Of a DNA stretch of 64,000 nucleotides, positions 24,759 to 44,139 are shown piece after piece; the stretch's first letter is position 1, and every line of letters starts with the position of its first letter. The stretch comes from Anthoceros angustus (lineage: Eukaryota > Plantae > Anthocerotophyta), in NCBI GenBank assembly GCA_010909165.1, contig MU008180.1:805884-869883 (forward strand), written 5' to 3'. A model generated the notes under the pieces. That model was not told the origin of the DNA and did no database searches. It was given only the letters and a program-made list of their open reading frames with translations. Position numbers and translations under genes: made by a program.

Positions 24759-27653
24759 TCAGGTGAATATAGTAACCACATCTCTCCTGTAACCACGAAC
24801 CATGAGAAGCCTGGGAATGCCGTCAACCAAGAGATCCATGTACTCCATATAGCAATGGGGTGGATGTCGTGGAGGAGGCGGGGGCAGGCTGACCAACACA
24901 ACTGCTGCCATTCGGGAGTATCTGAGAATGATGGAATTCAACTTCAGCGTTGTGTACAGGAACTTGTTGACCTGCTGCTCATTATATGAGCCATCATCTT
25001 GCAGCGTTCTCTTCCTCATTTCTGCAGCTTGCAAAGCTATTCGTTTCCTGGCTTTCGAGAACGCCTCCACGGCATCTTCCCTGCCTGTCTCAACCTGATG
25101 TTCTTCATGGCGGACGTCCTCCCATGATTTCATAGTTACTACAATAACTTCAGCTTGCATTCTAAGGTCATACAGAAATTTCTTCACATCCGTCTTCAGC
25201 TCCTCCGCCTCAGTGTCCTCTTCTGCAATGCAGAACACCTGAATCTTGCAATTTTCAAAGCTTTCTTTCGCCCTCAGGAGCTGCGATAGAAGTAGCATAA
25301 GCCCCCCATCTCTAACGATCCAATAAAGGTCAATGGTTCCATACTGCCTCTGAAACTCCCCAGGCCACTCATCTAGGCCCTTCACGATCACTACAGCCTT
25401 GTTTGCAGTGGAGCAGTTATTTATGACATTAACAAAAATGTTTGGAATGTCATTGAGCTTCTCTTCCTTCCATATTTCTGGATAGCGCATGCAAACAATA
25501 TTTGGCTTCAAGTTTGCAAGGCCCATGGTCTGCACTATCCCACAGAAGCCTTCACAAAAGTCCCTGGCTACCACAACCTCTGCAACTCCCTCACAGTTCT
25601 TGTAGTCTATGTATGTGCTCAATAACCTGGACGCTTGGCGAGCTTCCTCAACCTTCTCCTTGTAGTCACCTTGAGTAATAGACACAAAGATGGACATACC
25701 CCGACCCTTCTTCTTCATGCAGTTAGCAAAATCTGCCAGCTTGGGGTGACAAGGCACATCCATAGGTAGGATCCCCCAAGGCTTACACAAAATAAGAGGG
25801 ATAGGATACCAGTTCTTCGGATGCACCTGGGTGGCTCCAAGAGAGCGCAGACTTCGGAGTGCCAACTGGAAGTAAGCACTCTTGAAACCATCTCCCCAAT
25901 CACCACCCTTCCCCTTAATACTGACGTAGTAATAAAGAAGGCCAGCAAGAGCCAAAGAAATGATAGTAAATGACCATGAAATTAGAAACATGATCGTAAT
26001 GCAGAGAGTGGCTCCCAGGAGCGACAGGCTCCAGTGATGGAACTTCCAACGAGGCCGCCAGCTGGGAGCATCAAGCAAATCCAGAAGAAGGCACGACAGA
26101 TTCACCCCACCATAGCACATCAAGAAGAACATGGTGATGACAGGAGTAATCAGATCCAGATTACCAATCACAACAAAACTAGCTGTTATGAACATGGTAA
26201 ACAGGGTTGCCAAGTAAGGTTCCATGTTGTCATGGGCCTTGAAATACTTAAGCACAGGGAGGATGTCATCGTTTGCAATGGCAGCCAGCAGACGAGGAGC
26301 ACCTGTCAAACTCTGAAGAGCTGCACCGAGAGTTGATAGAATGATCCCAACCTGGACTACCCAGGCTTCTGGCCATGCCAGAGTTGCAGTCAGAAGTCGA
26401 TCTGTCAACAGCTCTTCCCTTGTGGCAACCGCTCCAAACATAAAGACGGAAACAAGATAGAGGAAAGTAGTGCTTGCAATGGCAGACAAGGTTCCGATAG
26501 GAATCGACTTCTGTGTGTCTCTCAGAGTAGCTGATCGATTCGATCCAGCCATAATTCCAGTAACAGCTGGGAAGAAAAGCCCCAGAAGACCGCTGAAGTT
26601 CCAGTAAATGATGCCATCCTCCGCAGGTATACCTGCTCTGTTGGTGCGGGTGTACTTAGAACCCCAATTACTCTTGAGAGTCTTGAAAGACAAGCCAGTG
26701 ATGCCAGGGTGAGCTTCATCCCGCCCTTGAGCTACAAAAATCCCGATGAAGATGAGGAAGACCGACATGAGAACAGGAATGAGAAAAGCGGGGGCCACTC
26801 GGTTGATGATCTTCACCCCTCCAAAGACGATGAGACATAAGACGACAGTGGCAATCACTCCGTACACCTGCAGATCGTGAAGGTTGGGGCTGTAGATTGC
26901 GGTGCTCGCGGTGGGAGCCAGGGATGAATTGGGCTCTAAATTTGTGATGGTATCCTTGAAAATCCCTGCTTTAGGTAGAGCGTCCAAAAACGTCTCGACC
27001 GCTCCCAGAATGTACAGAGAGCCTGCCACGGCATTCCCAAGAAAAAAACAGAGACCAATGCTAACACCAACTTCCGGGCCCAGGGCACGGCCAATGAGAA
27101 AGTAGGGGCCCCCGCCTTTCATAGCGCCATTGGTTGCGATCGCACTGAGAGAGAGCCCCGTCAAGAAAGTGCACAGACAGCACAAGGCGACCAGAAGAAA
27201 GCTCTGCCACACCCCAGCGATGCCCACAATCCACGAGAATCGGATGTAGAAAATAATCCCCAAAATGTTCTGCAAGCAAGGAATGAAGACTCCCATGAGC
27301 GTGCCCAGCTTGGCAGACTTGGGCCTAGGCCGGCCCAGCGTGATGGCAATCTCCTCTCCCCCGGGACTCAGCGGCGTGGACGGCTGCTGGCCGCCCATGC
27401 TCTTGAGGCCCACCACATCCACCAGCGGATCGAACTCGAACAGCTCCAGCTTGGATTCCCGCTCCGTGCGCTCAAAAATGGCATGGGTCGGCGAGGAGGG
27501 CTCCTTCTCCACACTGTCCCTCGCGTCGTCATTGACGATCATGCTGTAAGGGGATCTGGGAGGCGTGGCCAGATCCACAGCAATCATGTCGGCGGGGACA
27601 TGGTCCCCGTCCCCGTTGCCGTTGCCGTGGTGGTCCGCAGCCCCGTTGTCCAT
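24759..27653 (-). CDS. CCC1: Cation-chloride cotransporter 1 (SLC12), single exon, 964 aa from the first ATG (MDNGAAD); ORF track extends to a TTG at 27710
   Basis: ESKLELF.FD.LV..GLKSM, KLGTLMGVFIPCLQNILGII, GGGPYFLIGRALGPEVG, FFPAVTGIMAGSNRS, HPKNWYPIPL, C-terminal RGYRRDVVTIFT. Confidence 0.97.
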   Translation of the reverse strand: MDNGAADHHGNGNGDGDHVPADMIAVDLATPPRSPYSMIVNDDARDSVEKEPSSPTHAIFERTERESKLELFEFDPLVDVVGLKSMGGQQPSTPLSPGGEEIAITLGRPRPKSAKLGTLMGVFIPCLQNILGIIFYIRFSWIVGIAGVWQSFLLVALCCLCTFLTGLSLSAIATNGAMKGGGPYFLIGRALGPEVGVSIGLCFFLGNAVAGSLYILGAVETFLDALPKAGIFKDTITNLEPNSSLAPTASTAIYSPNLHDLQVYGVIATVVLCLIVFGGVKIINRVAPAFLIPVLMSVFLIFIGIFVAQGRDEAHPGITGLSFKTLKSNWGSKYTRTNRAGIPAEDGIIYWNFSGLLGLFFPAVTGIMAGSNRSATLRDTQKSIPIGTLSAIASTTFLYLVSVFMFGAVATREELLTDRLLTATLAWPEAWVVQVGIILSTLGAALQSLTGAPRLLAAIANDDILPVLKYFKAHDNMEPYLATLFTMFITASFVVIGNLDLITPVITMFFLMCYGGVNLSCLLLDLLDAPSWRPRWKFHHWSLSLLGATLCITIMFLISWSFTIISLALAGLLYYYVSIKGKGGDWGDGFKSAYFQLALRSLRSLGATQVHPKNWYPIPLILCKPWGILPMDVPCHPKLADFANCMKKKGRGMSIFVSITQGDYKEKVEEARQASRLLSTYIDYKNCEGVAEVVVARDFCEGFCGIVQTMGLANLKPNIVCMRYPEIWKEEKLNDIPNIFVNVINNCSTANKAVVIVKGLDEWPGEFQRQYGTIDLYWIVRDGGLMLLLSQLLRAKESFENCKIQVFCIAEEDTEAEELKTDVKKFLYDLRMQAEVIVVTMKSWEDVRHEEHQVETGREDAVEAFSKARKRIALQAAEMRKRTLQDDGSYNEQQVNKFLYTTLKLNSIILRYSRMAAVVLVSLPPPPPRHPPHCYMEYMDLLVDGIPRLLMVRGYRRDVVTIFT

Positions 27654-29529
27654 CTCTGCTCGCCGGCTATCATCCGAGGCCCGCCGGCACCAGCCCGATT
27701 GCCCCCACAACCCGCAGATCGGCCCAGTGGAGAGTCAGGCAGATCCGGATCAGGGCAGCACCGAAGGCGGCAATTTGCGGAGCGAGGCGCGGGCGCCCAG
27801 GAGCTCCATGCCTCCCGCTCGCGCTTCCGCTCCCCCGGGCTGCCTCCTCAAACTTGCAAATGCCTGCATGGGCATCCAGGTGGAGTGGGAGGTAGACCAG
27901 ACCTAGCTGCTGCTGCCTGCCGCTTTGAGCGTGCCCGTCTATCTACCCTCTCCCTGCTTGCTGGCCTTCCATGCCTGGGCTGGCCCGGCCTGCACTCGCC
28001 TTGCGTCTGGTGAGAACGCGTGGGAGAAGGAGCGAGGGAAGCAAACAAGGAAGCCCTGCAGAATGTACCGCCAAAGTCTGACTCCGGTGCACACCAAAAT
28101 GCCAGTGCGGGGATGTGATGAGAGGCCGAGATGTTCGGATTTTCATTTCACTCAGTCCATGTGCATACACTACCTATGCATACACATCAGCACATATGTT
28201 GTACAACATACTCCTCCCATGTCTGTTTCATCCAGAGCATAGCTACATTATTTAACATGGCCTTCAAGTGTAGGGCCCACCCAACGTCACAGAGACTTGG
28301 ACTCACGAACTGTCTGTCAGAGGGACGACATTCAAGACAAGCGGAGCATGAAATGCATCATTCACAACCTCATTTACATCAGGACAAGGTGTCTATATTA
28401 TTTTGATGCACGCACACATAGGCAAACAGGAAATGAAAATAGAGCAGGCTGCTTGAGCGTCTGCTCAAGGCCTGGGGTAATCACATTCATTCATCGTGCA
28501 TGCATCAGTACCTTGCTGGCCCTCTCCGAGTGTACCCCTAGCATCCGGCCATGTACCCCGAGCCCTCTCACAACTCCAGGCACAACAACCGTGGGCACTC
28601 CACTCAGTCAGGAGTCAGGACTGCTGAGTGCAGACAGCCACATGGATGTACAGCTGCAAAGAAGCATTTCGAAAACAGTATTCTGGTGCAGACAGAAGCT
28701 CCGGATCTACAGCCAACGCACGGCGTGCTTAGCTATAACAGATCCCTGTCCTTAGGTACCTGATATACAAGATATCTTCACGCCACAGCTCCCTCACTCA
28801 CAAGACAACGATCGCTGCAAAATTCCTACCGCTGCTGTCCTGTAGAACATCAAGAAGAGCGGACAACATCCAGCTGAACAGTTACCGGTTGGGAGGCCAA
28901 ATGTGTGCGTCAATGACCAGGAACGAAGGCGCGGGTACGCCGTTTCTGCACCCGATGCTGCTATAGTTTCGAGCATGAAACTCATGCCGGAGAAATGGAT
29001 GAAGCTCCTGCGAGTGGATCTTGTTCACGCAGGTCCTCAGGGTGTCACTTGTGATACGAGAAAACAGCCGTCCCCCCGCCATGACGACCCTCCATGATTC
29101 GATCCTCCTTCGGCCCTAGCACATACAGTTCTTCAATGCAGTTCATGCTCCTTCTCCACCAGAAGCCTGCGTCCTTTCGAGCTGCCTCGGCGGCTGGTGA
29201 AGGCGTGCCGGCTTCCCGGCTTCGTGCGCGACCTTGGCAGACTCCGCTGCCATCGCGGACGCTCCTGGCAGCATGGAGCTGCTTCCGAACGCTTCAGTCT
29301 TTGTTAAGTTCAAGTCGCGATGAAGATGTCACGTGACAGGCCACGCAACCCTTCCTCCTAGACGGTTAAAAGGTAGGTAGGTAGATAGCTAGCAAACGTT
29401 TACACCACTTAGGTACTGTGTTAAGGGATGCTTGAAACAAAAACCCTCCGGAATCAGATTCTAACAAAACTCTCCACCTCGCATGAGCGCGTAGGAAATC
29501 AATGTGTTGATTGCGGCAAGGAAGGCAAC

Positions 29530-32500
29530 ATGGGAGATGACTCTGACTCGGACGACTCCTGCACTACCCCAGGCACAAGCCAACCAGGTGAGGAAGCAAG
29601 CATTTTCTTGTCTTCACAAATTTGTGCGGAAGGTCAGGTTCTGTGACTGGCAATGGAAACTTCTGATGGAATTGGGATGTGGTCGATCAGGACATGACCT
29701 GGTGAGATACATCGAAACCGCAGTTGAGACATGTGCCACTGCCAATGTGGAGGCTGTGAAAATAATTCTTGGAGTATGTCACAGATTTCCCTTTTTCATA
29801 GCGCTGCTCCGGCCAATACAACTTGCTCACCGTATTAGCCTGACCATTGTCGTTCAGAGGTTGAGTGAAGCTGCAGACGACGCTGTCATGAAGCTCATCG
29901 GTGAACTCTGTGGGTTGTTTGAGCGATACAATACACGTCAAGTCAGCATGATCAAGCAGGCCTTGGGTGCGTTTCTGGCAGGAGGGACCTTGGATATGCA
30001 GGGGATTGACAAGGTTAAAGCTTACTTCAAGCTGGAGCCGTAAGTGCTGAAATACTTCGCAGCTGCCACTCGTGTTGACATACAGCGCCTCAACAGGTCT
30101 GCGAGGACGAAGAGTTTCAGGAAGGGATTCAACGAGTTCTGAGTTTCCTTCCAGGGAAACCTCGTGCTGAGAAGTCTGATGAAGGGTCCAAAATTGACAA
30201 TCAAGCTGCAGGAATTCTGGACCGTACAAGCATTACTGTGCTCTATTCTTCTGCGCCATCCTCATCTGCAGAGGACGCATTGAAGAAGCCACTGCATGAT
30301 TCTTCCGTCTCAGATACTGATCGAGCCGCAGAATCTGGATCGTCGACGGTTCCACCTCTGACCAGTAGAAGGTATGTCGGCCCCTTTGATCAGGGTCCGT
30401 GTATACAACTGGCGAGGAGACAGCCTAGTGAGAGGCTTTACTCGGTGCCCGTGGCTATTTTTTGTTTCCCGAGTGGTTGCTACCTCCCAGTCTCACTGTG
30501 ACAACTGCAGCGAAAACGAAAAAGCACCAAGCAACTGGTCTGAATCTTGGAAGCGGGCTGTGCGGGGAGTTTTGAAGAAACACCGACGCGAAAGGATAAG
30601 GTATGAGGTTTCTAGAGACTGGATTGTTGATAAAAGTGGGCGTTTAGCATCTGACGGCTGGAGATTGTGCAGGGATAAGGCTTTGAGGAGAATGAAAGCA
30701 GGGCCTCGCAAAATCATCCCAAAATCTGATGCCACCAAAGAGCGGCTTCGTAAAATTCTCGGGTGAGCCCGAAATAACGAACTACTCATAGATCCTAGGT
30801 TGTTTCTGTTTTATTTTCAGTGTGATTGTTTATGACATGGTAGCTTTCTTCAGAGAGCACTTCCTTTTTGGAGACTTGGATGTTTCGTTAAGAGAGGAGA
30901 TCATAGATGCCTTTCAGGATGTTCGGGTTGCACCAGGCACAGAAATTATCAAGCAGGGTGACATTGCAGACAACTTCTACATAATAGTACGTGCATGTAG
31001 CTTAATTGTCTCCACACCTGCGTATGCAATAATCGTGCAGCAGGTCGTGTGTATCATGGAAACGTGCTCAGAGTACCAACTTTCTATGCAACAAGTTGCT
31101 TGTAGCTGTGAGATGGAAACTCACAATTCTGAATGTATGACCTCGCCCTAATTTCAGGATGTTGGGGAATTCGACATTCTCGCCAAAAAGGTAAGTACTC
31201 TACAATGTGTGAATGTATTTGAAAGGCGCTTGTCACGAGAGCAGTATTAAGGAAATGGAAAATGACATGTAGGACAGCATAAGCTTAATCTCGTTTTGAC
31301 TATATGAAGTAGGACATCTACTCAGAAGCTTATGAGGAGTGAGTCACATCACTGGCTTCTTGACTTCGTTATTGTATCAAGTAGGGAAATGAGCCTCCTA
31401 CTCTTGTGAAAACTAGAGGTGCTGGGGAGAGCTTTGGAGAATTGGCTTTAATGTATGATAGTGTTCGAAACGCAACCTGCAAAGCAACAGTTCACTCATT
31501 ATTATGGGCTGTGGATCGAGCAACTTTCAAGTCAATTATTGGGCGGCATTTAGCCGGCTCAGCAACTGCACAGGTTGTTGAGTAGTGCTCTTAGGGTTCT
31601 CCATTTTTTTTGTTGCTTTCATCATTTATGGAGCTGGTCATAGTGCCAGACAAAACTGAAAACTCTGTTGGCGTGTTGCAGGTGCTAAGAGAGGCACCAA
31701 TTCTCAAAAAGCTTTCAACGAAGGAGATTGTCAGTATAAGTCAGCAGTGCACTGTCTCAACTTTTCAACGTGGTCAGCATATACTGCTCGCGGGTGTCAC
31801 AATGGACAAGGTTCTTCCCAACACATTTGAATTTGGTAAAGATGTCTCATGATCCAACCATCGACTCCCAAGAAGGAAGATGCCGTTAAACTGACACTAC
31901 GTACAACCTGCAGGTTCACCTGATTCAAGATGGTCAAGTGAGGGTTAGCTGGGGAACTATGGCAGGTGGATCTACTGGAAGTGCAGGTGGAGAGACAGTG
32001 GCAGTGATGAATCGGCTGGAAGTACTAGGTGAAGCACTTCTGTTGAGTGCGGAAGCGGTGAATCTGTGGACTTACGTTGCTTCTTCAGAACATGTAACTT
32101 GTTGCATTGGAATCACACTTGTCTGCCCACACAAATAGTTGGTGGAGTGTCAGAGAAGTATAGTGGTTGGTGTCAGAACCCTGTGGGACTTGCAATTGCT
32201 CTCATCACTTCCGTTTGTTCTCTTCCATGGTTCAGAGCACTGGTATGGGGTTGTAAGAAGTAACTCGCCCTTTTCTTTCGTTGTACCTCAGGTGACTACC
32301 CTCAGTATGGACAGAAGTGTGCTCACTGAGGGTATGCTACATAACATGAGAAAGGGTCTACAAATCCAGCTTGTTACCTTGGCTTTGCAGCGCGTTCCAG
32401 CATTTCTTGAGCTCAGCTTTGAGAAGCATGCACGTTTGGCGGAAGCATTTGGTGAAACGTGTCACTTGAGAGGTATGAAATCAAGAGTTGAGCGACCCTG

Positions 32501-35500
32501 GATGGTAGCAATCAGTGCACGTCCCTGGAACCTGTATGGGTGCAAGTTAGCCTGTCAGTTGCCAGAATTGTGCTGATTTCCTGAACAGCTGCACATAAAA
32601 GGGTTGGTCGTCTTATTGCAGGGCAGGAAATTATTACCTGTGGTGCAGCTTTGGGATCGGCAGCTAGGATATATGTGGTTCAAAATGGTTCAATATCTCT
32701 TTCCAGAGTCCCGGAACCAACGTTGAAGGATGCTATAAGACAGCAACGGGAGTCATCTGCTTCTGTTCTTGGTGGCTGGAGTACCAGATTTGGGTCTTTT
32801 CTGAAGACAACAGGTTCGGGTAGCACACCACAATCTCCTCGAGGAAGTATTATAGCAGCTGGTCCAGATTCATTATCCAAGATTGGCAAGGCTGTAGACT
32901 TTAGGACTACATTGCCTGAACTGAAGCTAGACCTTGTAGGGGACAAGAGCCCTCTTGTACCTCGGCAGGGGGGAAGCCCAAGGCAGCATATTGGGTCTGT
33001 GGTTCTTCCAAGGCTGACCCATTATTCTGCCTTAATTGGATGTTGTAATGAAGCTAGCCCACGTGGTCTGTGCCCCTCTGAATGCCCCTACACTAACTAT
33101 GCGGTCATTGCATCAGCAAGGATGCCAAGAAGTTATAGCTCGGTGGCCATCTTGTTATGCCCTAAAGCCGCTGGTGGCTGTGCATGTGGTACTATCTAAT
33201 ATGTCTTTGATTCTCATGCATCCAGGTCTTCTGGCCCATGGACCATAACAACGTATGGTGTGTTTGGTGACGAGTGTCTCCTGAACTCCACGAAAGACGA
33301 TACTGATGGGCCACTTTCGCAAGCAGGAGCTGTTGTGGATAGTGCAGGGGCTGTGTGTTTATCTATTTCACTGGCTGAAGTCACAGCGATAATTGGCCCA
33401 GTGCAGGAGCTTCTTACGAGGAATGTGAACTTGAAGGTGTTACGGTGTGCACTTTTCCCTGTTCAATGAGTAATCAGTGTAATATGCAAAGTTTGATTTC
33501 TCAGGTGAAATATCGAAGGAGCCAGTGGGGCAACAAGAAGTAGATTGAAACATTCTGAACGACTCTATGTTTTTTTGCTAAATTCGGATACACTTTGTAG
33601 GAAAGTTCCATGCTTAGAGTATTTGACGGCCTCAGAGTTAGACTCCCTTTCTCGTTCCATGGGTATACTCAAACTCAAGCCTGGGGAGACTGTCTATCGA
33701 GCCTCTGACGTTGCCGACAGGCTGTTCATTGTTCGGAAAGGAACAGTTCATGAAGTCAGGGCTGAAACAAGTACTAGAGGAAGTATACGAAGTATTCCAG
33801 ATCAAGTTGTATATTCCAAGGGATCCTTTTTTGGGGATGAGGCTCTTTTGCAAGCAGGACCAAGGGCGTGCACAATGGTAGCGGGAGAAGCAGCACATGG
33901 TGGATTAGGTCAGAAAAGATTTCCTGATCATGGTTCCCTCGAGGATCAGACTCTTATCTGGATAGGCTACTTCTATTTAGGATGTCTTTTAGCGTTCTAC
34001 GTGCAATACATTGCATGTCTCCCACTTTGTCATGGCTGTTACAGGAGTTGAACTGGTGTATCTGGATAGGGCTGTGTTGGAGACCAATCTTGGCCCGTTG
34101 GTTGAGCTAAATGAACTCCGGAGAAAGGAAAATGAGCTAAGAGGCATTGTGAAAACGATAGTTTTTGAGGAGCTTCAAATCATCGGACTTCTAGGAACAG
34201 GCATGATCTCCTCCTTGTCTCGGCAAGATTACTTTTGGGCATACCAACTGGTCAAAGGATCCTGGCGCGCGATTTCCATACCAGCCCAGGCGGAGCATTT
34301 GATCACTTTTAAAATGTTTGAGCATTTGATCACTTTTAAAATGTTTTGCATACAGGCCTTTTTGGGAAGGTGAAGTTGGTCTATAGCAATCGCAGTAAAA
34401 TGCACTATGCATTAAAGTGCGTGAATAAAGCTAAGGTATCATACTGTTATTGAATTTAACTGGGATGTGTTATACGTCTATGACTTATCTTTATTTATTA
34501 ATATCAAATAATACATTTTCACATAATTATATAATCCTCGTGGTAATCATGCAGGTTGTTAAAATGCAGGAGGAAGAACATCTTCGAAATGAAAAGTTGC
34601 ATATGGCAGAATTAGATCACCCGTTCATAACAAAGTTAATCCGCACTTTCAAGGATCAGACTTGTGTAAATTATTTCTCCGTGATTGTGCTTGAATGTTC
34701 TATATGTGTAGTTGTTGTATTTTTGTTTAATTTATCTTTTACTGAGATAATGTTTATTTGTAATGATATCATGTAGGTATATCTCTTACAAGAACTTACT
34801 ACGGGCCGAGAATTGTTTCTGTTTATGGAAAAAATTGGCCGTTTGCAAGAGTGGGAAGCTGCTTTTTATGCCGGAGGAGTACTTCTTGCGTAAGGTTTTA
34901 GAATAATGTTTCTAGTTTTTATTTCCACACTTGTTATCTGAATTACAAAATGATTTGTAATTTATAGGCTTGAGTACATGCATTCAAAAGGGATTGTGTA
35001 TAGAGACTTGAAACCGGAAAACACACTCATTGGAGATAATGGCTATCCTAAGCTTATTGATATGGGGTTTGCAAAAAAAATTCACAATCGACGAACGTAT
35101 TCCATGTGTGGAACACCAGACTATATGGCACCAGAGATTATAAAACGACAAGGACATGGCAAAGCGGTTGATTATTGGGCCTTAGGATGTATGATCTTTG
35201 AAATGATAACGAACACAAGTCCTTTCAATCGGTGTGACGATTCTCCACAAGTAAGGATGTGATTCGATTTCTTCTATGATATTAAAAAAATAGTTTTTAC
35301 AGTAAAATATCGTTGAACTATTATGATTCCATCAGGTAGTCTTTCAAAGAATAACAGAAGGACGGATGCGCTTCCCACCCTACATGAGTTTTAATGCTGT
35401 TGATATTATTAAAAAGTTACTGGATTCCAATCCTGAGACTCGTTTGGGATGTCGTAAACGAGGTGCCCTTGATGTTAAAGAACATCCTTTTTTCACGAAC

Positions 35501-35809
35501 TTGATAAACTTTCAACTTTTAATACGGCAAAAGGAAGATCCTCCTGTAAGTAAAATTGTTTAACATTTGAGTGGAATAAAATATTTTCATAATAAAACTT
35601 GAGTTTTGATAAAGTGCATAAGTCTATTAGAAAATCTGAATAAAATAATTAATATAATAATATAACAATAATAATAATTTTATTTTTAATAGATGATACC
35701 CCCAAGGATCATGGACTATTCATCACTATGTATTCGCGATGATGAACCAGAATATGTGGATGTTTCCAACTCTCCAATAATTGATAGAAACTGGGACGAT
35801 ATTTTTTAG
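29530..35809 (+). CDS. Cyclic-nucleotide-dependent AGC kinase (PKG-like): N-terminal region, four cNMP-binding domains, C-terminal kinase domain; >20 exons; start at 29530 or in-frame 29428
   Basis: [138 protein letters not shown]...DVKEHPFF; ends NWDDIF* at 35809. Confidence 0.9.
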
Positions 35810-38268: not shown

Positions 38269-40863
38269 ATGCAAGCTCACTTATTTCTTCACCAAGACAA
38301 AGGGTGCAAACTCAATTCAAGGGTAACTACTGTTTTGTGCAAATACATACTTATGTCTGATGAAACTCATATCTGTAGGATTGGACGTTTTGCTAGACGA
38401 GGACACACCACACGCCAGGTAGGAGGAGAGGATTGGAGGATGTTCACGCAGTTTCGTATTGTGAACATCACCTCCGGCTTGACCGCAACAGGAAGCCCAG
38501 CTCCCCAAGGAAACAAGGAGGTACCAAGGCAAGGAGGAGGCATCAGGAGCTCGGAAGGGTGGAGCGATGGCAGCGTCTTCGCTTGGACAGCCAACATTTC
38601 ACGGTACAGCAAAAATGGTCAGGTTGGCCAGGCTCTCTCAACCTACGACAAGATGCAACAGGCCGGTGTGCATCCCAACAGCCACACCTTTGTCACTCTG
38701 CTCAAAGCATGCACCAAGTCACGAGACCTGCAGCACGGCAAGCGCATTCACGCACACGCTCGAGCACATGGACTGGAATCTCATGCCTTCGTCGCGTCTG
38801 CGTTGATCACCATGTACGCAAAGTGTGGCAGCGTCGCGGACGCGCAGCAGGTGTTCGATGCCTTGCCTCGCCGTCACTTGGATATTGTGTCGTGGAATGC
38901 CATGATTGCGGCGCATGCGCAGCAACAGCAGGGATCGCAAGCCTTGCACCTTTTCCGGCTCATGCAACAACAGCCAGGGGTTACGCCAAACGCACGAACT
39001 TTTGTCAGCACTCTTCAAGCATGTGGCAGCCTTGCGCAGGAGGAGGAAGGTGCGCTGGTGGATGGCCAACAGGTTAAGCTCCACTCCCTGCTACAGGCCA
39101 GGGACATTCATGCTGCAGCCAGGAAAGGCGGATTTGATTCTCATGGCTTTGTTGCCAATACCTTACTTACAGTCTATTCCAAATGTGGCAGCATCGAGGA
39201 TGCTGAACGCGTGTTCCACACTTTGTGCCACTGCGATTTGGTGTCATGGAATGCTATGCTTGCAGCGTATGCACAGCAGCAGAACCTAGCACCCAAGGCC
39301 TTGACTCTCTTTCAGCAAATGCGACATCAGGGGGTGAGGCCAGACGCACGCTCCCTTGTAAGTGTGCTGCAAGCATGTGCTAGCATGGCGCAGAGCAGGG
39401 AGGAGGTCCTGAGGAAGGGCAGGGAAGTACATTGTGTAGCTACAGCTTGTGGCCTGGATTCTCACCTCTTTGTGGCTAACGCTTTGCTCACGATGTATGG
39501 AAAGTGTGGGAGCATCGAGGATGCCCGCCAGGTTTTTGAAACACTGCACGACCGCGACGTGGTGTCATGGACTGCCATGATCGCAGCCTATGTCCAGCAG
39601 GAGCAATCGGAAGCTGCCCTGCATGCTTTTTGGCAGATGCAAGGCGAAGGAGTTAGGCCAGATGCGAGAGCCTTTGTCACCGCTCTGCAAGCATGTGGTA
39701 ACCTCGCTGAGAAGGAGCTAGCTTCTCCTCCCTTCAACGGTCAGACTGTGAAGCCGTGGTCCCTTCAACGGGGGAAGGAGGTACATGCTGCGGCTAAAGC
39801 AAGGGGATTTGACTCAGATTCCTTTGTGGGTAATTGTTTGATTAGTATGTATGCCAAGTGTGGGAGCATCAAACATGCAGAGGACGTGTTTTATACACTG
39901 TCCAAGCGAGATGTGGTGTCGTGGACTGCTATGGTCGAAGCATATGCCCACAACGACCAAGCAGAAAAGGCATTACAATTCTATTCTCAGATGCAGGCAG
40001 GAGGCATGAAGTCCAATGAGGCAACTTTTGTTTCCGTTTTGAAGGCTTGCAGCAGTATAGGGGCGTTAGAAATGTGTGTGCGCACTCATCAAAGTATTGT
40101 GCAGAGCGGATTCGGTCACAGTCTTTGTGCTGCGAACAGTCTTATTCATGCCTACGGCAATTGTGGCAGCATGGTGGATGCACAATGTGTATTCAACTCA
40201 TTGCCTCACCCTGATGTGGTGTCATGGTCTGCACTAATTGCTGGGTATGCCCGACAAGGAGATTGTTTGACAAGTATCCAGTGCTACGAGAGCATGCGTC
40301 TGGCAGGTGTGGAACCGAATGCCGTCACATTTCTGGCTCTCTTGTCTGCATGCTGTCATGCTGGCATGGTGGATAAGGGATTGGAGAGCTTTGAAAGGAT
40401 GACCAGAGATCATGGCATGTCTCCAGGGCTGGAGCACTTTGCTTGTGTCATTGATCTCGTTGGGCGTGCAGGACTCTTCAGCAAGGCAGAAGAGCTGGTT
40501 TCGCAGATGCCAATGAAGCCTGACCTTCCGGTGTGGCTTTGCCTACTTGGTGCCTGCCGAAATTATGGAAATGTGGTACTAGGCAAGCGAGCCTTTGACG
40601 GTGCCGTGCAGTTACAACCAAGACATGCAGCTGCCTACGTTCTCATGTCCAACATCTATATGGATGCTGGCATGCAAGACTCTGCTAAGGGAATAGATGA
40701 GCTGAGGCAGGGTTTACTTGCATGGAAAAAAACCGGGCAGAGCTGGATTGAGCATGATCAGGAGGTACACACGTTTTTGGTGGGAGACTGCCTCCATCCA
40801 CAGGAGGCAGTGATATACAAATTGCTCAAACTCCTAAGCTCGCAGATCAGGAAAGATGCTTGA
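38269..40863 (+). CDS. PLS-class PPR protein with E1/E2/E+ C-terminus and no DYW domain; probable organellar RNA-editing factor; single exon, 864 aa
   Basis: Repeated MYAKCGS..A..VF / DVVSW.AMI / GV.P...TFV..L.AC motifs; E domain HFACVIDLVGRAG, PDLPVWLCLLGACR, AAAYVLMSNIY; ends KKTGQSWIE...HTFLVGDCLHP. Confidence 0.97.
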   Translation: MQAHLFLHQDKGCKLNSRVTTVLCKYILMSDETHICRIGRFARRGHTTRQVGGEDWRMFTQFRIVNITSGLTATGSPAPQGNKEVPRQGGGIRSSEGWSDGSVFAWTANISRYSKNGQVGQALSTYDKMQQAGVHPNSHTFVTLLKACTKSRDLQHGKRIHAHARAHGLESHAFVASALITMYAKCGSVADAQQVFDALPRRHLDIVSWNAMIAAHAQQQQGSQALHLFRLMQQQPGVTPNARTFVSTLQACGSLAQEEEGALVDGQQVKLHSLLQARDIHAAARKGGFDSHGFVANTLLTVYSKCGSIEDAERVFHTLCHCDLVSWNAMLAAYAQQQNLAPKALTLFQQMRHQGVRPDARSLVSVLQACASMAQSREEVLRKGREVHCVATACGLDSHLFVANALLTMYGKCGSIEDARQVFETLHDRDVVSWTAMIAAYVQQEQSEAALHAFWQMQGEGVRPDARAFVTALQACGNLAEKELASPPFNGQTVKPWSLQRGKEVHAAAKARGFDSDSFVGNCLISMYAKCGSIKHAEDVFYTLSKRDVVSWTAMVEAYAHNDQAEKALQFYSQMQAGGMKSNEATFVSVLKACSSIGALEMCVRTHQSIVQSGFGHSLCAANSLIHAYGNCGSMVDAQCVFNSLPHPDVVSWSALIAGYARQGDCLTSIQCYESMRLAGVEPNAVTFLALLSACCHAGMVDKGLESFERMTRDHGMSPGLEHFACVIDLVGRAGLFSKAEELVSQMPMKPDLPVWLCLLGACRNYGNVVLGKRAFDGAVQLQPRHAAAYVLMSNIYMDAGMQDSAKGIDELRQGLLAWKKTGQSWIEHDQEVHTFLVGDCLHPQEAVIYKLLKLLSSQIRKDA

Positions 40864-42663: not shown

Positions 42664-44139
42664 ATGGCCAACAATGTGGAAGGCAGTAGGGTGCAAGAAG
42701 GGGACCAAGATGAGGAGAGACTATCTCTTCTAGTTGTTTTTGTGGAAAATAAAGCTGAAGGCGCTAGGGCATCAAAGAAAGATGACATGGATGCTGCTTT
42801 GTGGAGTAGATTGCCAACTGATATCTTGACGCATGCTATGGCATTAAAAAAAGATGACATGGACGCTGCTTTGTGGAGTACGTTGCCAAATGATATCTTG
42901 ACGCATGTGCTTACTCGAGAACTACCTGTCAACAGTTGCTTGCGGTTTCGATGTGTTTGTAAGGAGTGGAGACACATGCTCTCGGGTTCTAACTTCAAAA
43001 GAACCATGTTATGTGGTTTGCATTATTCTACTTGTCGTAAAAATACTTCTAGAGTTGAAAGGTCTTCACGTCTCATAAAGGAGGCGGAGAGAATGTCATC
43101 CTTGCTTTACGCTCCAGGATCGATTATGAAAATGCACATGCACGAGATAAGCCTGTGTTTCCTACCTCCTATGAATTATAAGCTTTTGAGCTCGGATAAG
43201 GGTTTGCTCCTATTAGAAGGAACGGAGAATAACTATGATTGGAAAAATCATCAGGATGTTTCCGATTGGGAAGATTTTCTTATCAAAAGACATTTATTTG
43301 TTTGCAATCCCTTGACCAAGTCATGGAAGCAGTTGCCTCCATTACCGGAAGTGAAAATCGAGGGAAACTTAAATTCTCCTTATACGGAAACCGATATTGG
43401 TTTGAACTCCATACAAGTGGATGCAACTACTAAAGCATACCAAGTTATGCACATGCAAGAACTTCTAGAATTGCGACGTATAGTATTGTTCCTTTATGAT
43501 TCAGAATACTCATCTTGGAAATATTGGGAGCATGTATTGGATGAGGATGAGGATGAAGATTATTCTTGCAAATTTCTTTTTTACGAAGGGGATATTATTG
43601 CTCTCAAGCGAAATTATACTACCGAAAGCTTCGAGACCTGGTCGGTGAAGGGGGGAGCCACGTTTCGTTACCTGGACATGCCTAACTATAGGCCATCAAA
43701 TTGTACTAAGTATTTCTGTGTGGAACAACAAGGTGATCATGTCATTGCAGCGGGTGCGCTTGAGGATGATTTTGGAGTAGGGATTTGGAAGCTCAGTCAT
43801 AAGTGGAGAGAATGGAACCTTGTATCCACCATTAAGTTCGAGGGTCGACTCTACCATCCCAAAAGACACTCACACATTGCTAGTAAGAGGGAGTTTTCTT
43901 TTCAAATGATGTGTGCTGTGGGAGATGTCATCTTCATCAAATTTCTTGTAAAGTGGGATTCGGATCCATCTTTCCCTCAGGCTCACTTATGGCCAAACAA
44001 GGAGACAGAAGGGTTCTTTGTCTTCTATACCAACACTCAGACTTGGTCTCTAAATTGGCCAGCTAAACATTGCTGTACATTGCCATTTTTTCGCCCTCCA
44101 GTTTGGTTTGAGCCTAATCTACTAGTGTCCCAGGTGTGA
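42664..44139 (+). CDS. F-box protein with kelch-like/beta-propeller C-terminal region, single exon, 491 aa
   Basis: LWSTLPNDILTHVLTRELPVNSCLRFRCVCKEWR F-box; LFVCNPLTKSWKQLPPLP; C-terminal FEPNL. Confidence 0.9.
   Translation: MANNVEGSRVQEGDQDEERLSLLVVFVENKAEGARASKKDDMDAALWSRLPTDILTHAMALKKDDMDAALWSTLPNDILTHVLTRELPVNSCLRFRCVCKEWRHMLSGSNFKRTMLCGLHYSTCRKNTSRVERSSRLIKEAERMSSLLYAPGSIMKMHMHEISLCFLPPMNYKLLSSDKGLLLLEGTENNYDWKNHQDVSDWEDFLIKRHLFVCNPLTKSWKQLPPLPEVKIEGNLNSPYTETDIGLNSIQVDATTKAYQVMHMQELLELRRIVLFLYDSEYSSWKYWEHVLDEDEDEDYSCKFLFYEGDIIALKRNYTTESFETWSVKGGATFRYLDMPNYRPSNCTKYFCVEQQGDHVIAAGALEDDFGVGIWKLSHKWREWNLVSTIKFEGRLYHPKRHSHIASKREFSFQMMCAVGDVIFIKFLVKWDSDPSFPQAHLWPNKETEGFFVFYTNTQTWSLNWPAKHCCTLPFFRPPVWFEPNLLVSQV

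Follow-up and report, generated by a model that had tools for sequence, protein, structure and literature searches.

Introduction

In protein kinases of the PKG type, the cyclic-nucleotide-binding (CNB) domains share one chain with the kinase: metazoan PKG combines two CNBs with a leucine zipper at the N-terminus, and Plasmodium PKG has four CNBs, of which only the third is degenerate. For plants, a 2018 review described cyclic-nucleotide-dependent protein kinases as still controversial (PMC6174285), and such kinases are unproven or absent there according to reviews (PMC6174285, PMC3499706). The main text of a report on the liverwort Marchantia describes a cAMP module, consisting of CAPE and the PKA regulatory subunit (PKA-R), that controls sperm motility; PKA-R mutants were impaired in this respect, and 14 CNB proteins were counted, only PKA being pursued (PMC11032487). 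That main text holds no discussion of a fused PKG-type kinase. Here we describe a gene on the + strand of a 64,000-nucleotide stretch of the genome of the hornwort Anthoceros angustus (assembly GCA_010909165.1, contig MU008180.1, positions 805,884 to 869,883; hereafter "the window", whose first letter is position 1 of all coordinates below). We consider it probable that this locus encodes an orthologue within a land-plant clade of PKG-type cyclic-nucleotide-dependent kinases, a clade that descends from green-algal PKGs with four CNBs.

Gene structure

Between 29.4 and 35.9 kb, the + strand of the window holds many short open reading frames (ORFs) that alternate between frames, a pattern like that of an intron-rich eukaryotic gene. 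An earlier, sequence-only reading had proposed a PKG-like kinase with four CNBs here, and all of the motifs that it quoted are present on this strand. The gene model was built from joints in RNA contigs, the donor at 32093/32094, frame-keeping GT-AG pairs and one GC-AG intron (34201-34355). Its principal features are as follows.

29530..35809, + strand: whole coding span; 22 exons, coding sequence of 3558 nt, 1185 residues and a stop, forming a single ORF without internal stop
29530 (start ATG) and 35807-35809 (stop codon), + strand: ends of the gene model of the PKG-type kinase gene
29428..29430, + strand: upstream ATG in the same frame as the ATG at 29530; probably not the start codon
29530-29587, 29691-29773, 29858-30013, 30097-30371, + strand: exons 1-4; conserved N-terminal region and variable Ser-rich linker, with introns 1-3 from RNA joints
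30511-30600, + strand: exon 5; contains RRERI
34045-34200, 34356-34435, 34555-34665, 34777-34889, 34968-35250, 35336-35545, 35693-35809, + strand: exons 16-22; kinase part

RNA contigs were matched over 29400-35399: those from one run (X1) were 100% identical to the window, and those from three runs of two related taxa were ~95% identical. Introns 1-10, intron 12 and the acceptor of intron 11, which we count as twelve, are given by GT..AG joints in RNA-like contigs that match the window perfectly; thus, the locus is transcribed and spliced. The other nine introns were placed by their GT/GC-AG sites and by colinearity with orthologues. The ATG at 29530 is favored over that at 29428 because the relatives have a 2-nt insertion at 29486 that breaks the frame between the two.

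The model is colinear, from residue 1-22 to residue 1185, with the full-length proteins of Marchantia, Riccia (two species), Calypogeia and Physcomitrium; with the Sphagnum and Diphasiastrum proteins, colinearity begins just before CNB1. A search with the CNB4 exon also returned a 981-residue protein that aligns in one segment to model residues 208-1185 (61% identity). Over the aligned spans, identity between the model and the orthologues is 47-62%. In the orthologue proteins, the exon 11/12 junction is free of any insert, and all of them keep the glycine loop. This colinearity, the uninterrupted junction and the common glycine loop validate the gene model.

Kinase domain

The CNBs lie N-terminal to the kinase on one polypeptide, in a single open frame across the 22 exons that is colinear with the orthologues. 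The kinase part comprises:

34158..35806, + strand: exons 16-22, coding for the AGC kinase domain and its tail; exon pieces match Pfam Pkinase
34194-34372, 34406-34423, 34999-35022, 35059-35076, + strand: glycine loop, Lys of YALK, YRDLKPEN and DMG, respectively
35095-35136 and 35789-35806, + strand: T-loop to APE, and the C-terminal NWDDIF

Pfam Pkinase matched five ORF pieces between 34340 and 35560 (best E 2.5e-35), and the closest PDB sequences to the largest kinase exon were PKG I, then PKA-C. All catalytic motifs are intact. A Ser occupies the T-loop position of Thr197 in PKA, and the domain bears the truncated hydrophobic tail of PKG/PKA on an AGC kinase, with the PKG-like ending WDDIF. 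It is 70-80% identical to the kinase domains of the orthologues.

CNB modules

Four modules precede the kinase:

30716..31690, + strand: CNB1, exons 6-9 and the first 9 nt of exon 10; Pfam E 3.4e-8, introns from RNA joints
31158-31190, + strand: micro-exon of 33 nt inside CNB1, with RNA joints on both sides
31691..32366, + strand: CNB2, exons 10-12; weak Pfam match (E 0.055), barrel in the structural model
32367..33415, + strand: CNB3, exons 12-14; no Pfam match on the window piece, supported by the orthologue profile
33416..34106, + strand: CNB4, exons 14-16; Pfam cNMP_binding E 2.2e-10

Family, fold and homologue searches were queried with single exons of the window or with orthologue proteins, not with the spliced protein of the window. 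Pfam cNMP_binding matched four ORF pieces, falling in CNB1 (E 3.4e-8 and 0.0038), CNB2 (weakly, E 0.055) and CNB4 (E 2.2e-10); in the land-plant orthologues, it recognizes only two or three CNBs. When ten orthologous CNB3 segments were combined into a profile, it matched CNB-B of PKG I in its N-terminal half (E 1.8e-6), as well as PKA RII and Plasmodium PKG. An AlphaFold 2 (AF2) model of residues 200-1164 of the Marchantia orthologue (mean pLDDT, predicted local distance difference test, of 84.6) comprises four beta-barrel modules and the kinase. The two halves of CNB3 are confident strands in this model, and its only disordered part is an insert of ~80 residues with pLDDT below 50. Foldseek returned full-length Plasmodium PKG as the top match to the model (~933 columns, E 2.5e-60), followed by the human PKG I R-C complex. 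Together, the modeled barrels, the Foldseek alignment and the CNB3 profile match argue for four tandem CNB folds ahead of the kinase, which bears out the architecture proposed by the sequence-only reading. On this architecture, the protein can safely be predicted to be a PKG-type cyclic-nucleotide-regulated kinase.

The phosphate-binding cassettes divide the modules into two pairs. That of CNB1 (GELAL...RNAT, 31433-31477) is canonical, and its Gly-Glu and Arg occur in all orthologues. That of CNB4 (FGDEALL..PRACT, 33830-33874) has the Arg; most orthologues read FGExAL..PRST. In CNB2, the cassette (LGEALLL..NLWT, 32025-32072) is degenerate: it keeps Gly-Glu but has NLW where Arg is expected, a pattern common to the orthologues. 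The CNB3 cassette (FGDECLL, 33263-33298) is likewise degenerate and without Arg, as is its counterpart in the orthologues, FGEECL. CNB3 is further interrupted by a Ser/Gly-rich insert of ~95 residues (~32702 to 33241, across intron 13), which measures 95-150 residues across the window protein and its orthologues and contains a conserved GWGxRLGSFLK motif. The proposed division, with Arg kept in CNB1 and CNB4 and the other two cassettes degenerate, thus recurs across the orthologues: Arg is absent from CNB2 and CNB3 in every one of them, and only one Sphagnum protein departs from the pattern in CNB4.

The residue that follows the cassette Arg had been taken as a sign that the ligand might be cAMP. 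It is Asn in CNB1 of all orthologues; in CNB4, it is Ala in the window, Ser in most orthologues, and Val and Leu in two mosses. The R-N of CNB1 fits neither the textbook cAMP nor the textbook cGMP pattern. Because most orthologues have R-S-T in CNB4, to which the R-A-C of the window is the exception, the cAMP inference is unsupported, and we rejected assigning a ligand from this residue.

N-terminal region

Residues ~20-100 are conserved and align with the N-termini of the Sphagnum and liverwort proteins; the variable Ser-rich linker follows. No PDB sequence matched this region below E 0.5. In exon 5, one short site is of interest:

30584..30598, + strand: RRERI, candidate pseudosubstrate (autoinhibitory) site

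The RR[EQ]RI motif is kept in the orthologues, ~35 residues upstream of CNB1; the AF2 model begins downstream of it. Given its resemblance to RRNAI of PKI and RRGAI of PKA RI, it may serve as a pseudosubstrate. A separate candidate feature, N-myristoylation of the MGDD N-terminus, was rejected: the N-terminus is not conserved, and an Asp directly after the Gly breaches the usual N-myristoylation rule. That idea had been modeled on the ciliary kinases of the Chlamydomonas flagellar proteome (PMC2171396).

Distribution and phylogeny

Homologues were sought with the full Diphasiastrum protein, with its CNB4-plus-kinase part and, so as to catch fragments, with its kinase domain alone. Only liverworts (Marchantia, Riccia, Calypogeia), mosses (Sphagnum, Physcomitrium, Ceratodon), lycophytes (Diphasiastrum, Selaginella) and one transcriptome yielded orthologues at 63-81% identity. 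The Marchantia polymorpha orthologue is MPTK2_1g01440 (Mp1g01440, MARPO_0029s0103). A Marchantia paleacea protein (P0012) belongs to the same clade; it is a partial model, an ORF without most of the kinase, at 47% identity to the query. Identity fell to 35-43% for the next CNB-kinase proteins, namely PKGs from green algae, oomycetes, dinoflagellates and apicomplexans. These database searches returned no orthologue from ferns, Ginkgo, cycads, conifers or charophytes, which sampling may explain. The only angiosperm relatives were PP2C-CNB-kinase fusions (E ~1e-33); since angiosperms are heavily sampled, the absence of an orthologue from them is credible.

In our trees, the land-plant proteins form one clade with 100% support, which adjoins chlorophyte PKGs with four Pfam CNBs and stands apart from Plasmodium PKG and the angiosperm PP2C-kinase. 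The existence of multi-CNB PKGs in green algae and apicomplexans, from which the sequence-only reading had started, is borne out by the four Pfam CNBs of the algal proteins and by the structural match to Plasmodium PKG. Within the land-plant clade, mosses form one group and liverworts another, and in the first tree the two come together (SH-aLRT, an approximate likelihood-ratio test, 97). The window protein falls outside these groups and is placed with the lycophytes (89/97). The stem branch of the clade is long, ~1.2-1.4. As part of what we regard as the probable explanation of the locus, the land-plant clade descends vertically from green-algal four-CNB PKGs.

A prasinophyte protein from MMETSP (P0189, Crustomastix stigmatica) combines PP2C, three CNBs and a kinase, and its kinase lies near those of the four-CNB green-algal PKGs. 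Because this alga carries the PP2C-CNB-kinase layout in that position, the layout of the angiosperm "PKG" may be old in green plants.

Transcripts and integrity of the gene

The features on which the downstream half of the model turns are these:

32094..32165, + strand: 72-nt extension of exon 11 that includes a TAG in frame (32136-32138); GT of the productive donor at 32094
32995..33225, + strand: intron 13; unspliced in all matched RNA contigs, which are continuous over 32620-33284
33445..33600, + strand: intron 14, at the CNB3-CNB4 junction; unspliced in RNA contigs, with an indel of the relatives at 33526
33900..34044, + strand: intron 15; unspliced in RNA contigs, with indels of the relatives at 33979 and 33987; splice sites inferred
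34201..34355, + strand: intron 16; interrupts the glycine loop, with GC-AG boundary inferred; unspliced in RNA contigs
34436..34554, + strand: intron 17; RNA contigs of Anthoceros and of one relative end at 34437 and 34458, just beyond the exon 17 donor

Several observations weigh against reading the locus as an intact PKG-type kinase gene. The 1185-residue reading depends on the exon 11 donor at 32093/32094 and on the splicing of introns 13-21, neither of which is visible in the Anthoceros RNA contigs. In 4/4 runs (three related taxa), exon 11 instead ends at 32165, with a joint from 32164/5 to 32291/2 that leaves the frame closed by the TAG at 32136-32138. The RNA contigs are unspliced from 32620 to ~34440, i.e. 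through introns 13-16, and no RNA contig of Anthoceros or its relatives covers the kinase exons on 34460-35399. One inferred intron requires a GC donor. In CNB4, Asp takes the place of the usual Glu, and the Arg is missing in one Sphagnum orthologue. The site RRERI is a candidate pseudosubstrate by analogy, and the literature searched yielded no biochemical data for any member of the clade.

Some of these points have an explanation. The contig gap over 34460-35399 is not evidence of absence, because conserved stretches can be filtered out of the comparison; for run X1, the matched pieces alone account for roughly its word share of 0.55. The unspliced stretches are evidently non-coding, for the relatives have frame-breaking indels at 33042, 33072, 33199, 33526, 33979 and 33987; the first three of these fall in intron 13. 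Two GT-AG pairs in range leave the frame open, one of which gives that intron; the alternative donor, at 33070, is disfavored because the relatives' 1-nt insertion at 33042 would then fall in coding sequence. For intron 16, GT donors were rejected: none restores the glycine loop GTGLFGKV, which is conserved in all orthologues, and the GC donor was inferred on this basis. Between 34233 and 34344, the relatives' letters in this intron are replaced. We also observed in it a tandem duplication of ~27 nt (~34294-34347), where the relatives differ (85 nt of other sequence), and, elsewhere, an additional unspliced contig across intron 7 (30958-31187; runs X1 and X2).

Could the gene be decaying into a pseudogene in this lineage, with the odd transcripts reflecting a loss of splicing? 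The productive transcript was not seen in contigs of Anthoceros or of the two relatives, as such decay would have it. Yet the 22 exons remain in frame without stop or frameshift, every catalytic motif is intact, and 47-62% identity to the orthologues persists over the aligned spans. Outside the linker, 8/9 of the visible exonic differences from the relatives are synonymous third-position changes, the differences in the domain exons are mostly of this kind, and indels occur in introns only; divergence is ~9% in the single retained intron that was sampled. These patterns place the kinase gene under purifying selection, on which ground it is not a pseudogene; we reject the decay reading as extremely improbable.

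Other seed-free plants provided transcripts that join CNB and kinase exons. In Anthoceros, RNA contigs connect CNB4 to the first kinase exon solely in unspliced form, so the expected junction was not found there; it was found in an mRNA contig of another, distant seed-free plant (L001), spliced from CNB1 through to the kinase end, and in Physcomitrium. At ~430-480 of L001, 48 nt containing two TGA codons are inserted in frame right after ASSEH, which is the position of intron 11, and its called ORF begins just downstream of the insert. Two distant species thus have a stop-carrying insert at this CNB2 intron, the L001 form apparently arising from an upstream acceptor. Physcomitrium contigs (L002, 1549-1846; L003; L005) retain an intron of ~298 nt at the CNB3-CNB4 junction, corresponding to intron 14 of the window; their remaining introns are spliced and the contigs continue into the kinase. 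A truncated Physcomitrium ORF (P0342) that ends right after ...NLKNLR was present in 24-32 RNA assemblies.

The stop in exon 11 admits the idea that the gene makes mainly a truncated regulatory protein of ~490 residues, which would be similar to a PKA regulatory subunit and hold the N-terminal region, the inhibitor-like site, CNB1 and a portion of CNB2; CNB3-CNB4-kinase would then be made separately or not at all. The stop-carrying junction in all four runs fits this idea, as do the two TGA codons of L001 at the same position and the called ORF that starts after them. However, a stop upstream of further spliced introns is the usual mark of a transcript targeted for decay; all orthologue annotations, as well as Physcomitrium contigs, read through the exon 11 stop position; and the downstream exons are conserved as coding sequence in frame with the upstream ones. 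The contigs cannot tell which form is translated, and we judge a truncated main product to be unlikely.

At the same junctions, unproductive forms recur in Anthoceros and its two relatives, and again in Physcomitrium and a third, distant species. They suggest regulated productive splicing or a dampening of output coupled to decay; because these forms carry premature stops and retained introns, kinase output also appears to be under control at the level of RNA. RNA of the locus occurs in many runs from at least seven studies; the contigs give no ratios, strand or tissue. A further proposal is that splicing, and not transcription, sets the gate on output, with unproductive RNA in ordinary tissues and the productive form only in special cells, plausibly spermatogenous ones. 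We offer it as a long shot, if a slightly better one than the truncated product; if true, it would mean a cyclic-nucleotide kinase confined to the male germline of seed-free plants.

CNB2 is also the main site of difference among annotated isoforms and models (Physcomitrium P0164 vs. P0338; P0012; P0163). Physcomitrium isoform X3 skips one exon-10-like block, the M. paleacea model has a gap, and the S. magellanicum sequence diverges in CNB2. These differences fit an alternative-splicing hot spot.

Proposed function

By analogy with PKG and PKA, the regulatory half would hold the resting kinase in an autoinhibited state, perhaps through RRERI in the substrate cleft. Cyclic nucleotide would bind CNB1 and CNB4, the two cassettes with the Gly-Glu/Arg signature, of which CNB4 adjoins the kinase; binding would free the catalytic domain to phosphorylate basophilic Ser/Thr sites. 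CNB2 and CNB3, whose cassettes have no Arg in any orthologue, would be non-binding spacers with a structural or regulatory part, much as the third, degenerate CNB is in apicomplexan PKG.

The sequence-only reading had gone further, casting the kinase as a cyclic-nucleotide effector of the sperm or flagellum that is retained only in plants with motile sperm. Part of the expected distribution holds: orthologues occur in liverworts, mosses, lycophytes and Anthoceros, and none is found among angiosperms. Part does not: ferns, Ginkgo and cycads, which have motile sperm, gave no orthologue in the database searches either, whereas CAPE, whose distribution follows motile sperm (PMC8115329), is kept there; sampling may again explain this difference. 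The sperm motility module and the 14 CNB proteins of Marchantia, cited above from the main text of that report, would fit such a role, and the PKG-like and cyclic-nucleotide-dependent kinases of the Chlamydomonas flagellar proteome point the same way. The unproductive nature of the transcripts fits a productive form limited to a rare tissue, but the gene is transcribed in the many runs noted above. In the literature searched, we found no expression or localization data for any orthologue, and no paper naming Mp1g01440 or Mapoly0029s0103. On balance, a sperm or flagellar role is a tentative possibility that we would not favor, though it is appreciably better placed than the splicing gate.

For the assignment to the PKG-type clade, the implications are broader. 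Where flowering plants have only the atypical PP2C-kinase fusion, seed-free plants would have a canonical, apparently functional PKG-type kinase. The orthologues are already in public annotations, often auto-named "cGMP-dependent protein kinase". What is added here is the Anthoceros member, which would make hornworts the third bryophyte lineage shown with the gene; a putative domain anatomy of two live and two dead CNBs, judged by cassette, with a conserved insert; a distribution narrower than that of CAPE; and the recurring unproductive transcript forms. Mp1g01440 of Marchantia or the Physcomitrium gene offers a clean genetic entry to the action of a cGMP/cAMP kinase in plants, and such work could show why euphyllophytes or seed plants lost the kinase.

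Neighboring genes

Three further ORFs were noted around the kinase gene.

24762-27710, - strand: intronless ORF of 983 residues with AA_permease and SLC12 domains, a cation-chloride cotransporter, just upstream of the kinase gene
38269-40860, + strand: intronless 864-residue pentatricopeptide repeat (PPR) protein with E motif, which suggests an organelle RNA-editing factor
42664-44136: F-box protein ORF

Comparison with known systems

The PKGs of Plasmodium falciparum and P. vivax (5DYK, 5DZC) resemble the plant protein in having four serial CNBs followed by an AGC kinase, with some CNBs degenerate, and they share 37-39% identity with the CNB4-plus-kinase part of the Diphasiastrum orthologue. 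The plant protein differs in that both its second and its third CNB are degenerate, the third with a disordered insert of ~95 residues, and in its extra N-terminal region of ~230 residues. The modeled packing of the domains also differs (template-modeling score, TM, ~0.45-0.5; root-mean-square deviation ~15 Å), and the two fall in separate clades of the tree.

The green-algal four-CNB PKGs (Cymbomonas, Dolichomastix, Bryopsis, Myrmecia, Trebouxia) form the nearest clade, and Pfam finds in them four CNB stretches and a kinase. All four algal CNBs are thus visible to Pfam, in contrast to those of the land-plant proteins; identity is just 38-41%, and the land-plant stem is long. The Chlamydomonas flagellar kinases (PMC2171396) are likened to the plant protein by description rather than by sequence.

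Metazoan PKG I/II shares with the plant protein the WD-x-x-F C-terminus and the placement of CNBs N-terminal to the kinase. The plant protein, however, has four CNBs and an unrelated N-terminal region without a PDB match. The angiosperm PP2C-CNB-kinase (At2g20040 family; Urochloa P0181/P0182) also carries CNBs and a kinase on one chain, but it has a PP2C domain and two CNBs, its alignment covers 20% of the query at 31% identity, and its branch in the tree is separate and very long; by sequence and tree position, it is not an orthologue. Lastly, the Marchantia PKA module (MpPKAR1/2, MpPKAC) and CAPE are likewise cyclic-nucleotide signaling parts of a seed-free plant. There, the regulatory and catalytic functions of PKA reside on separate chains, whereas the Anthoceros locus and its orthologues would unite them in one fused kinase of the PKG type.

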